Positions 37,253 through 41,850 of a stretch of 64,000 bases of DNA are shown here, piece by piece (within the stretch, counting starts at the first letter, position 1; every line of letters starts with the position of its first letter). The notes beneath the pieces are model-generated. The model did not search any database, was not told the origin of the DNA, and saw only the letters and a list, made by a program, of their open reading frames with translations. The stretch covers positions 806,001-870,000 of the forward strand of contig JANJGN010000052.1 in assembly GCA_026770705.1 (NCBI GenBank), in the 5' to 3' direction. The stretch comes from Isurus oxyrinchus. Taxonomy: Eukaryota. The position numbers and the translations under genes are program-made.

Positions 37253-37501
37253 TCAGTTATGCTCGAACCTGATCTGTGCGTATTCCGTCTCCTCTTCCCT
37301 GTGGACAGACCCATCATCACTGGACATCCTCAATACTTGGGGATTGGCGTAGAGAAGGCCGTTGGGATTGTCGATGTGCCAATGTCCAGCATCGCCTCCC
37401 AATGCACCTTCAGAGAGACCCCGGGGAGCTGGGGTCTCCCCCTCACTAGTTGTGTCTCTGGTTGTGTTCTGGGGCTCAGTAATCAGCACGTTCTGTTTAC
37501 C
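37253..37501 (-). CDS. Siglec-type terminal cytoplasmic exon; candidate exon 3 of a HAMP-Siglec chimera
   Basis: ctctgtag|GKQNVLITEPQNTT...LLYANPQV...TEYAQIRFEHN*, phase 0. AATAAA(-) at 36720-36725. Confidence 0.8.
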   Translation of the reverse strand, partial: GKQNVLITEPQNTTRDTTSEGETPAPRGLSEGALGGDAGHWHIDNPNGLLYANPQVLRMSSDDGSVHREEETEYAQIRFEHN

Positions 37502-37644
37502 CTACAGAGAAATGGAAACAGAAGACATCCTCACATTATTTACTGGCACTGATAGGGTTAAATTATTGAGCAGCCTCATTAGTGTCAGTCTTGTCTCAGT
37601 GGGTTTAACCCTCTCTCTCATGTCATCTGAAAGAAACCACCTAT

Positions 37645-38064
37645 GGCAGTGCAGTGCTCCCTCAGTACTGACCCCACCGACTGTGCAGCACATCCTCAAT
37701 AGTGACCCTCTGTCAGTCTCACACTCCCTCTGTACAGTGCAGCACTTCCTTAGCACTGACCCTCCAACAGTGCAGCACTCCCTTAGCACTGACCCTCTGA
37801 CAGTGCAGCACTCACTCAGTACTGACCCTCCATCAGTGCAGCACTCCCTTAGCCCTGACCCTCTGACAGTGCAGCACTCCCTCAGTACTGACCGTCTGAC
37901 AATGCAGCACCCCCTCAGTACTGACCCTCCGACTGTGCAGTCCCCCGCCGGTACTGACCCTCTGACAGTGCAGCACTCCAAGACTGACCGTCTGACAATG
38001 CAGCACCCCCTCAGAACTGACCCTCCGACTGTCCTGCCCCCCCGCCGGTACTGACCCTCCGACA
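37645..38064. repeat. 33-bp array forming the junction between Siglec intron and HAMP intron
   Basis: Left flank is homologous to 34580-34730 (Siglec); right part is homologous to 883-1080 inverted (HAMP intron). Confidence 0.88.
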
Positions 38065-39581
38065 GCTCGGTAATTTCTCAATTATGCCTGGTGGTCCTTT
38101 TAACTCAGAGCTGAGAGTTGCAGAGAATCGAGCACACATCCTGAACTGACACTTGCAGTGCAAGTACTGGGAGCGCGCTGGTCATTATCATGCTGCTGTC
38201 TGTGGGATCTTACTGTGCGCCAATGGCTGATTCTTTTCCCACAGTACATCAGTGACCTCACATGAAAGAAAAAAAGCACTTGATTGTCTGCGAAACACTT
38301 TGGGACGTCCTGATGTGTTGGAAGGCGCTAGAGAAATGCAAGTCCTCTTTGTCTTTCACTTGATCCTCTAAGGTGTCTGTTGATTAACCAGCCTCTCGGT
38401 GTTTGATGTAGGCCTGGTTATAAACAGTTAGAAGGATCAAATATCAAAAGTGCTTTGGCTGACAGTCAAACCGATTGTGCATTCGGAGAGATTAGATACG
38501 GTCTGCACACAATGACTCCAGTCTCTGGCACTGACTGCCGCCTGGGGTCTCCCTTCCACATAACACTCACATCTTGCATTTACACAGCGCCTCTGATATT
38601 GCAAAATGTCCCAGCCCACATTACCGGAGCGTAAATCAGAGAGAAGTCTAACACTGAGTCACATATGGAGATATTAGGGTTAGGTGACCAAAAGCTTGGT
38701 CAAAGATGTCAGTTTTTAAGGAGCGTCTTAAAGGAGAGAGAGAGAGAGAGGCAGAGAGGTTAAGGGAGGGTATTCCGGAGCTCAGGGCCCCAGGCAGCTG
38801 AAGGCACGGCCACCAATGGTGGAGCGATGGGAATCAGGGGGACCCGGGAGATGCAGTAATGTCAGAGATTTTGGAGGAACATCGGGACCATATCTCCATA
38901 TCTCTCTCTCTCTTTCTCTCATCCACTCCTCCTCTCCCTGTCTCTCTCTCTCCTACTCTTCCTCTCAATTGCCCTCTCTCCCAATCTTTCTCTCCTCTCT
39001 CCCTTTTCCTGTCTCTCTCCCTCTCTCTCCCCTGTCTCTTTCTCCCACTCTGTATCTCTCCCTCTCTCTCACACTATTTTTGTAACTTTCGCTCACTCTG
39101 TAACTCTCCCTTTCCTGTTAATTTCTCTCTCTTGGACAATCTCTCTTCTCTTTTCACTTTCCCTCACTCTGCATCTCTTTAATTTCTCCCTCTGTCACTC
39201 TCTCCCACCTATGTTCTTTCCCTTTCACCCCTCCCCGTCCCACTCTCTGTCTCTCTCTTCCAATCCCTCCCTCCCCCATTCCATCCCTCTCTCCGACTCT
39301 CGACTCCCAGCCTCTCTTTAACCCACTCCCAGGCTGGATCAGTCTCCCTCTCACTATTCCCGGCGTGGGTTACATTTAAAATTCCTGTGGGGATATGTTC
39401 ACTTCCTTGGAATTGCCTCTTCCCAGCTTTGCAAAAAAAGGGGGGGGGGGCTCGATTTCAAACATGCCTCCTGAGTATAACCGAGACAGACTGCCACTGA
39501 AATCAGCTTGAAATCAGAAAACTTTCTGTGGAAGAAACGAGCAGGGAGAAACCTTAAAATAAGGAATGAATTTCCACCTAC

Positions 39582-39638
39582 CGTGTCCGGGGAATCCACA
39601 GATTTCTCAATCGTCGAAGAACCTAAAGCAGTGTCAAC
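39582..39638 (-). CDS. HAMP: Hepcidin-like exon 2 (pro-region, 57 nt, phase 0-0)
   Basis: ttctttctttttgcag|VDTALGSSTIEKSVDSPDT|gtaggt; the other two frames are closed. Size and phase match hepcidin exon 2. Confidence 0.72.
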
Positions 39639-39739
39639 CTGCAAAAAGAAAGAATTTATCAGGGAGAAAGTGAGAGGAGGATTGAGGGAGAGGGAGAGAG
39701 AGAGAGAGAGGTACAGGAGAGAGAGGGGGAGGAGGACAG

Positions 39740-40390
39740 ACTTGCATTTCTCTAACGCCTTTCACCACATCCCAAAGCATTTCACAGCCACTGAAGGATG
39801 TTTTTGAAGTGCACTCACACTGTAGGAAATGTGGCAGCTGATTTGTGCACAGCAAGATCCCACAAATAGCAATGTGATCATGGCCTAGATCATCTGTTTT
39901 TGGTGATGTTGGGTGAGGGATAAATATTGGTCCCAGGACACCGGGGAGAACACCCCCTGCTCTTCCTCCAAATAGTGGCTGTGGGATCTTTCACACCCGC
40001 CCGAGAGGGCAGACGGGGGACTCAGTTTAATGTCTCATTCAACATTGTTGTGCTCCCTCAGTACTAACCCTTTGACACTGCAGCACTCCCTTAGTATTAA
40101 CCCTTCGATAGTGCTGCGCTCCCTCAGTACTGTCCCTCCGTCAGTGCAGCTCTATTTCAGTACTAACCCTTCGACACAGCAGCACTCCCTCAGTACTAAC
40201 CCTTCGATAGTGCTGCACTCCCACAGTATTGTCCCTCCGTCAGTGCAGCGCTCCCTCAGTACTGACCCTCCGACACAGCAGCACTCCCTCAGTACTGACC
40301 TCCGACAGTATAGCACTCACTCAGTACTGTCCCTCCAATAGTGCAACACTTCCACACTACTGACCCTCTGACAGTGCAGCACTCCCTCAG
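39740..40390 (-). mobile_element. DeuSINE-like SINE with 33-bp array
   Basis: Reverse complement of the 883-1560 family. Confidence 0.65.
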
Positions 40391-40469
40391 CACGGAGTGT
40401 TGACCGACGTTATGGGACTGAATTCCCTGGAGTGAGACTCAGACCAGAGATTTAGGTAGGGTTGTTCCG

Positions 40470-41275
40470 GCTGGAGGAGGTTACAGAGATAGGGAGGGTT
40501 GTAGAGGCTGTAGGAGGTAACAGAGATAGGGAGGGTTCTAGAGGCTGTAGGAGGTGACAGAGATAGGGAAGGTTGTAGGGGCTGTAGGAGGTTACAGAGA
40601 TAGGGAGGTGAGTAGGGGCTGTAGGAGGTTAATGAGATGGGGGGGGTTGTGGGGGCTGGAGGAGGTTACAGAGGTAAGGAGGGTTGTAGAGGCTGGAGGA
40701 GGTTACCAAAATAGATACTGCTGTAGGGGCCACAGTAGGTTACAGAGATAGGGAGAGTTATAGTGTGGAGAGGACGTTATAGAGTTCATGAGCATTGTAG
40801 GGGCTGGAGGAGGTTACAGTGATTCTGAGGGTCATGGGGCCTGGAGGAGGTTACAGAGATAGGGAGGGTTGTAGGGTCTGGAGGAGGTTACAGAGATAGG
40901 GAGGGTTGTAGGGTCTAGAGGAGGTTACAGTGATCATGAGGGTTGTGGGGCCTGGGGGAGGTTACAGAGATAGGGAGGTTTATAGGGGCTGGAGGAGGTT
41001 ACAGAGATAGGGAGGGTTGTAGGGGCTGGAGGAGGTTACAGAGATAGGGAGTGTTGTAGGGGCTGGAGGAGGTAACAGAGATAGGGACAGTTGTAGGGGC
41101 TGGAGGAAGTTACAGAGATGGGGATTGTTGTAGGGACTGGAGGAGTTTACAGATATAGGGAGGGTTGTAGCGGCTGGAGGAGGTTACAGAGATAGGGAGG
41201 GTTGTAGGGGCTGGAGGAGTTTACAGAGATAGGGAGGGTTGTACGGGCTGGAGGAGGTTACAGAGATAGGGAGTC
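40470..41275. repeat. ~38-bp tandem repeat (ggctggaggaggttacagagatagggagggttgtag)
   Basis: About 20 direct units; an opposite-orientation array lies at 43930-44250. Confidence 0.9.
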
Positions 41276-41474
41276 GCTGAGGAGGGATTGAAAACAAGAA
41301 TGAGAATTTCAGGGGAAATGACAGAAGGAAATGATGTTAAATTCATAGAGGGCGACAATATTAAAGGCACGAACATAATAATATCAAACTGCGGAAGTGA
41401 CCAGTCTATCTGGGTGGTAGATGTAGAGTCATGTGCAAGAAACACCTCACCCAGAGGGACATCTCTTAGCTTAC

Positions 41475-41567
41475 CCTCGACAAGGAGAAGAAGTGACTCA
41501 GCTGCAGGGAGAGCAGCAAAGTCAGAGTGAACAAGACAAGTCGCCATTTCATCTGGGAGCTTCCCAT
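41475..41567 (-). CDS. HAMP: Hepcidin-like exon 1 (signal peptide)
   Basis: MGSSQMKWRLVLFTLTLLLSLQLSHFFSLSR|gtaagc, phase 0, with basic n-region and hydrophobic core. Alternative ATG at 41552; TATAA about 75 nt upstream. Confidence 0.75.
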
Positions 41568-41639
41568 CTCTGCCTGTCTCTTCTGATCTTCTGGCTCTGC
41601 TTTGATGCTTTGGTTTGTAACTAGAGGAGCTTCCTGCTC

Positions 41640-41850
41640 TTATACCTGAAACACTTGAAGGGGACAGCCGCGGGTGGGTAGCTGTGTGGTATCACACCCA
41701 TTTCTGGATATTGCAGTGTCGATGTTCCCTGTCCCACTGGCCTGGGACCAGCAGTAAGGTCACTGGGACATTGACTGTCTGGCGCCGAGAACTATCAGTC
41801 CCTCCGCAACGCCCTTCACCTTGTGCAAATATGTGTTCATATTGATGCAA
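41640..41850 (-). promoter_or_regulatory. Hepcidin-type proximal promoter
   Basis: TATAA 41640-41644; GGCGCC 41781-41786 abutting a GTCT Smad element; TTGTGCAA 41821-41828 and TGATGCAA 41843-41850 (C/EBP-type). Confidence 0.62.

Follow-up and report, generated by a model that had tools for sequence, protein, structure and literature searches.

Can the promoter and first exons of a hepcidin gene, separated from the exon that encodes the hepcidin peptide, become the front end of another gene, and would the result be a useful one? Positions 37,253 to 41,850 of a 64-kb stretch of Isurus oxyrinchus contig JANJGN010000052.1 (the whole stretch is called the window here) raise this question, since on the minus strand a hepcidin-type promoter and exons 1 and 2 run into exons that encode the tail of a Siglec, a neighbouring gene. 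We consider this fusion unit to be, with a probability of about 0.72, an expressed by-product of cluster rearrangement, either a fusion pseudogene or a proto-gene, arising from a young fusion of neighbouring gene families in a lamniform-type shark. The source of the window is a shark, and its immunoglobulin (Ig) and tail exons are closest to RefSeq models of Carcharodon carcharias (white shark) and Cetorhinus maximus (basking shark). Similarity searches were run exon by exon. The features concerned are as follows.

41637-41852, minus strand: hepcidin-type promoter, its motifs read directly in the sequence
41567-41475, minus strand: coding part of exon 1, 31 amino acids, signal-peptide-like, ending in phase 0 with donor GTAAGC (from translation)
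39638-39582, minus strand: exon 2, 19 amino acids of pro-region, phase 0-0 (from translation and RNA joints on both sides)
37880-39581, minus strand: copy of hepcidin intron 2, near-identical to, and inverted relative to, window positions 50-1070
37640-38065, minus strand: 33-bp satellite containing the hepcidin/Siglec breakpoint (from a three-way alignment)
37501-37269, minus strand: Siglec tail exon 1 in the form seen in RNA, 233 nt, or 77 codons plus 2 nt (from a joint in run X6)
37268-37253, minus strand: remainder of the tail exon with a stop (FEHN, then stop), from translation; its terminal use is unsupported by RNA
36101-36020, minus strand: linker exon, 82 nt, entered in phase 2 and ending in phase 0 (from tblastn to P0002, P0003 and P0005)
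34575-34327, minus strand: Siglec tail exon 2, with 82 codons and a stop, ending in TEYAQIRFKRN, in frame with the linker
1-1762, plus strand: parental-type hepcidin paralogue, comprising intron 2 (which begins before the window start) to 1645 and exon 3 at 1646-1762

The hybrid transcript and its gene model

Contigs of sequencing runs were placed on 36300-41900, where run X6 is RNA-like and runs X1 and X5 are DNA; X6 carries the same organism label as the best-matching DNA runs and behaves as RNA, with depths of 20,000-150,000 in exon bins and of ~1,000 in intron bins. At the boundary between promoter and exon 1, X6 depth climbs from 667 (41723-41900) to 120,711 (41536-41722). The TATA, GGCGCC and C/EBP motifs that the initial annotation had placed in this promoter were found there: TATAAGAG lies at 41644-41637, 70 nt upstream of the ATG, with a putative C/EBP-like element, TTGCACAA, at 41828-41821 and a putative element of GGCGCC and an immediately adjoining AGAC at 41786-41777 (all on the minus strand). 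Because GGCGCC occurs only this once in the 64 kb, its position in the promoter is unlikely to be due to chance. The structure that follows is of hepcidin type, with exons of 31 and 19 amino acids in phases 0 and 0-0 and a hepcidin intron 2, and the translations previously given for the minus-strand exons and for the exon at 1646 were all reproduced exactly. Exon 1 has a hydrophobic core (Kyte-Doolittle values up to 2.5); a Pfam search with exon 1 alone gave no match.

The fusion is transcribed. The joint from exon 1 to exon 2 (41475>39638) is present in 11 X6 contigs and the joint from exon 2 to the tail exon (39582>37501) in one, at a depth of 4352, both with GT..AG ends; neither occurs in X1 or X5, so that both splices predicted from sequence, including the one from exon 2 into 37501, are borne out in RNA. 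On its shorter side the fusion joint spans 26 letters, the length that a k=31 graph yields where other hepcidin transcripts share exon 2. X6 shows no listed base differences from the window in exon 1, exon 2 or tail exon 1. We conclude that a hybrid transcript running from exon 1 through exon 2 to tail exon 1 exists, and that it crosses the fusion with its frame kept, as a transcript of a chimeric gene should. Since the splice is canonical, as are the splice sites of the fusion in general, and in cis, exon 2 and a tail exon of this kind must lie on one primary transcript; and since it is found in RNA and absent from DNA, a pure assembly artefact is unlikely.

A separate observation concerns hepcidin intron 2, in which a cryptic exon (38413-38384, minus strand; acceptor 38415-38414) is joined to exon 2 in X6 RNA. 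This joint (38412>39581) has a depth of 844 and GT..AG ends, is likewise absent from X1 and X5, and leads to a stop after 9 codons; the cryptic exon could derive from either hepcidin copy.

The 3' end of the gene differs from that first proposed, which was a 132-residue protein ending in FEHN. The tail exon is indeed intact, begins in phase 0 (its open reading frame, 37501-37253 on the minus strand, encodes 82 amino acids plus stop) and has an AATAAA below it, at 36725-36720, ~530 nt below the stop at 37253. The proposed stop and 3' untranslated region did not hold, however: X6 depth is 0 at 37122-37237, directly 3' of the stop and including the bases 16-33 beyond it, against 20,730-47,080 in exon bins, and one X6 contig exits the exon at 37268 through an internal donor (ATCAG/GTTCGA, 37269/37268), its 25 loose letters equalling 36101-36077 with one synonymous difference. 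That contig shows tail exon 1 to be an internal exon spliced to the linker, which fits splicing in the family. The linker, of which the window holds one copy, finishes the split Arg codon, continues as RKTAMEERVSGTSDIVLTPSPLSVKHQ and has a good acceptor and donor. From the phases and the family layout we infer that the fusion transcript continues from the linker into tail exon 2. The reading frame, open through all five exons, therefore probably comprises 31+19+77+28+82 = 237 codons instead of 132.

No transmembrane or linker exon was found in the window upstream of the tail exon in the fusion, nor any Ig exon between the hepcidin-type promoter and the tail exons; the V-set/Ig_CD22 exons in the window belong to other genes (62-63 and 25-26 kb). 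Tail exon 1 carries LLYANP and TEYAQI as well as GHWH, which is also seen in a first tail among the shark Siglec models. TEYAQI, present in both tails, fits the pattern of the immunoreceptor tyrosine-based switch motif (ITSM; T-x-Y-x-x-V/I), whereas the proximal motif, LLYANP or FLYANP, has proline at +3 and falls outside the pattern of the immunoreceptor tyrosine-based inhibitory motif (ITIM; I/V/L/S-x-Y-x-x-I/V/L). The tail at 55129 carries LFYANI instead. Relative to this upper tail (54960-54985), the two lower tails (37330-37350 and 34405-34425) have a 1-nt insertion and a 1-nt deletion ~15 nt apart, a compensated frameshift that turns LFYANINFSKL, which has the ITIM pattern, into LLYANPQVLRM or FLYANPQVFRV. 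Decay of orphan exons was considered as the origin of the YANP motif and rejected, because full-length models from white shark and basking shark have YANP as well.

Breakpoint and proposed route of the fusion

The 5' parent is represented at the window start, where the other copy of the intron leads, as the initial annotation had it, to a Cys-rich exon at 1646. This exon 3 (1646-1762, plus strand) encodes a six-Cys hepcidin-like peptide, C-x3-C-x-CC-x11-CC, and on its own matches Pfam Hepcidin PF06446 with E = 8.8e-4 and 20 bits, which is under the 27-bit cut-off set for the whole protein; a PDB sequence search with it returned nothing meaningful. Its long loop contains an N-x-T sequon. No second exon-3-like sequence was found elsewhere in the 64-kb window. 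The basic convertase stretch RMSRQR sits in this paralogue exon, on the strand opposite to the fusion, and the fusion has no such site; the Cys-rich mature peptide, typically with 8 Cys, is also absent from it, its exons being without any cysteine. The loss of furin site and mature hepcidin described earlier is thus confirmed, and because the fusion lacks exon 3, and hence both the furin-type site and the Cys-rich peptide, its product cannot be hepcidin.

Intron 2 of the fusion had been described as an inverted copy of the bases at the window start, and the alignment agrees: 50-1186 matches 38889-37761 in inverted orientation at 96.7% identity. Outside the satellite the two intron copies differ at 10 of 989 aligned bases (99% identical, ~1% divergence); with so few differences, the fusion event or the last homogenisation is recent.

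The breakpoint was likewise correctly assigned to the 33-bp satellite, an array of ~400 bp whose units are ~80% similar. In a three-way alignment, identity switches from hepcidin intron to Siglec intron inside the array, at ~37720-37880: upstream satellite units match hepcidin copy 1, the last units and a unique intron segment match the introns 5' of the other two tail exons, and between these flanks the fusion array runs through units of its own type. On the Siglec side, a unit made up of the tail exon, the intron before it and some of the satellite is directly duplicated at 34130-35005 (85%) and also matches 54849-55242 (86%). Two parent genes are identifiable and the breakpoint between them is mapped, as in a chimeric gene.

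We propose that the 5' part comes from a hepcidin paralogue that lost exon 3 but retained the promoter, the exons for signal peptide and pro-region and most of intron 2, the join lying within the 33-bp satellite common to both parent introns. The 3' partner would be the end of a CD33-like Siglec gene (tail, linker and tail exons), whose Ig, transmembrane and first linker exons would be gone. The simplest route would be a deletion by unequal recombination between satellites of the same orientation, one in a hepcidin copy lying upstream and the other in a Siglec gene lying downstream; in both parent introns the array has the same direction relative to the sense strand. This route fits because hepcidin exon 3 and the Siglec V-set-to-first-linker exons are exactly what is missing. 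An alternative route is an inverted segmental duplication ending in the satellite. We infer that a simple deletion between satellites of adjacent genes on the same strand would explain the fusion at least as well as an inversion, and the duplicate counts as inverted only relative to the copy at the window start.

The array itself recurs at no fewer than seven places in the window (7.9-8.9, 14.6-14.9, 34.7-35.0, 37.6-38.1, 40.0-40.4, 48.1-48.4 and 61.6-61.9 kb), often heading the body of an interspersed repeat, so possible recombination substrates are many.

Alternatives and what the fusion may mean

The predicted product begins with a signal peptide, after which comes a disordered tail that carries tyrosine motifs; it lacks a membrane anchor, an Ig domain and the hepcidin peptide. 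Were it made, its route would be the secretory path, where the tyrosine motifs could not meet cytosolic kinases or phosphatases. Several points weigh against our reading of the fusion as a by-product, and they are set out here with the alternatives on which they bear.

A useful gene that has been retained would also be expected to show an open frame and a substantial depth at the junction. Such a functional new gene, whose secreted, glycosylated, disordered protein would combine one or two Siglec tails with the signal and pro-region of hepcidin, and which would be under hepcidin-type (liver, BMP, inflammation) control and retained by selection, is unlikely in our judgement. The frame open across five exons, a fusion-splice depth above the X6 intron level and the promoter's GGCGCC-plus-AGAC element, unique in the window, speak for it, but frame compatibility is no evidence of selection, because chance alone gives a match about 1 in 3 times, and the exons were intact when joined, only ~1% divergence ago. 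Nor is there a sign of purifying selection between tail copies, where the ratio of non-synonymous to synonymous substitution rates (dN/dS) is 1.5-2.1; with ~4 synonymous and 21 non-synonymous differences, however, this is a weak test that cannot exclude selection. Tyrosine signalling motifs of the ITIM/ITSM type have no known extracellular role. In run X18, from a related organism (organism B), exon 1 is present and the tail exon has no depth, and no annotated hepcidin-tail protein was found in white shark or basking shark among proteins of 45-143 and 224-712 amino acids; against proteins of 45-143 amino acids, the tail exon matched only one exon-fragment model, from another species. Two short, domain-less proteins, P0018 and P0019, which the tail-linker-tail region of P0002 matched among proteins of 224-712 amino acids, were examined as candidate hepcidin fusions and rejected, since their transmembrane-linker-tail-linker-tail layout identifies them as N-terminally truncated Siglec models. 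A full-text literature search found no paper on shark hepcidin gene expansion or on a hepcidin-Siglec fusion; nurse shark hepcidin is listed in a plasma proteome paper (PMC9207270). Taken together, we give the fusion only a slim chance of being a useful new gene.

The RNA support comes from contigs of one sample of unspecified tissue, in which contig depth is a poor measure of expression, and the step from linker to tail exon 2 lies outside the contigs placed on 36300-41900. The transcripts may also derive from a near-identical fusion copy elsewhere in the genome. In the extreme form of this alternative, the window copy is silent and all RNA stems from sister copies, which we hold to be improbable. 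In intron 2, 8 differences from the window are listed for the X6 contigs, only 3 of the 8 matching hepcidin copy 1; the loose-end linker letters differ at one base; and DNA depths in the non-satellite parts of 36300-41900 (~800-2,400 in X1 and 10-35 in the small run X5), together with several alternative letters, suggest that the hepcidin-type unit is present in many near-identical genomic copies. Against a silent window copy stands the lack of any listed X6 difference in exon 1, exon 2 and tail exon 1, and the RNA and the assembly may stem from different individuals.

The weakest alternative, a collapse of two distinct 33-bp arrays by the assembler, which would leave exon 2 without a true link to the tail exon at this place, is very improbable: the breakpoint does lie in a 400-bp array of ~80% similar units that no DNA contig of X1 or X5 spans, so that the junction is backed through the RNA splice and not through DNA, and in one X6 contig the satellite is 130 bases (~four units) shorter, with a joint at 37918>38049, reflecting either array length variation or a sister copy, but the canonical cis-splice from exon 2 to 37501, seen in RNA and not in DNA, needs both exons on one primary transcript in the genome, and the RNA exon sequences match the window.

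An expressed by-product of cluster rearrangement accordingly remains our preferred reading, and the locus is of interest as such. It is a well-resolved case of exon shuffling in a cartilaginous fish, in which one can see both parents, the breakpoint repeat, the age (~1% divergence) and also the hybrid splice, and it shows the amplified, interleaved hepcidin/Siglec cluster of a shark generating new transcription units. Automatic annotation could label such loci ‘hepcidin’ or ‘Siglec’, and gene counts of both families need care. That the rearrangement went further and yielded a liver-secreted, glycosylated protein of hepcidin signal and pro-region with a double Siglec tail, regulated like hepcidin and retained in several copies, seems doubtful to us; if true, a signalling module of the cytoplasm would, unusually, have been reused as an extracellular protein.

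Neighbouring Siglec-like genes and known parallels

The label ‘Siglec’ for the surrounding genes is sound because their V-set exons match V-set and Ig_CD22 above threshold. Tandem, near-identical Ig-domain exons with a ~1-kb period occupy 56964-61512 (minus strand; five copies, 93-97%), and a second array of three to four copies with the same ~1-kb period lies at 21246-23624 (minus strand); both are recent exon amplifications inside Siglec-like genes. In the Siglec gene lying upstream, with its V-set at 62.6-63.0 kb, the tail exon is at 55129-54884 (minus strand), and no transmembrane or linker exon was found between its last Ig exon and this tail (54884-56964, minus strand); the gene may be a pseudogene or encode a form without a membrane part, or masked stretches may conceal some of its exons. 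The sole transmembrane exon found in the window, GRDSNEWKAGLLGAGICLSVGLSGFFIFKCVRK at 20041-19943 (minus strand), belongs to a gene with its V-set exon at 25.7-26.1 kb; downstream of this transmembrane exon neither a linker nor a tail exon was found.

The closest known parallel to the shark locus is, by analogy, the human SIGLEC14/5 fusion (the SIGLEC14-null allele), which places SIGLEC5 under the SIGLEC14 promoter (PMC4042635). In the human case, recombination between highly similar sequences in a Siglec cluster, with deletion of what lay between, brings downstream coding exons under an upstream promoter (PMC4042635), as it would in the shark. The human fusion, however, has a Siglec on either side and yields a normal Siglec-5, whereas in the shark the 5' parent is hepcidin, an intronic satellite is the site of exchange, and the product would be a cytoplasmic tail only, with no Ig or membrane part.

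HAMP genes have three exons, for signal, pro-region and Cys-rich peptide, and the fusion resembles them in its promoter motifs and its exons of 31 and 19 amino acids (phase 0-0), while its intron 2 is 99% identical to the paralogue intron that ends in a Pfam-Hepcidin exon; unlike HAMP, it is without exon 3, furin-type site and Cys-rich peptide. The linkage of hepcidin and Siglec genes is old, because mammalian HAMP lies close to USF2, FFAR genes and the Siglec gene MAG (PMC4453067).

On the 3' side, the tail exon is 65-78% identical to those of lamniform CD33-like inhibitory Siglecs (RefSeq models of C. carcharias and C. maximus, for example P0017, P0002 and P0003), with which the fusion shares the linker exon, the internal junction TEYAQIR/RKTA and the tail-linker-tail layout. 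Full-length white and basking shark models run from transmembrane through linker (RKTA.EERVSG...VKHQ), tail and linker to tail, with the junction ...TEYAQIR/(R/K)KTA..., and the fusion appears, on this comparison, to have captured a normal Siglec 3' end. Unlike in those genes, the V-set, C2-set, transmembrane and first linker exons are replaced by the hepcidin 5' part.

Haemoglobin Lepore and the CYP11B1/CYP11B2 hybrid are promoter-swap or hybrid genes produced by unequal crossing-over. Like them, the shark fusion would be an in-frame hybrid under the upstream promoter, formed by deletion between adjacent genes that are paralogous or share a repeat; in Lepore and the CYP11B hybrid, however, the genes are homologous and the hybrid is a functional protein of the same fold, whereas in the shark unrelated genes would have been joined through a shared intronic repeat.

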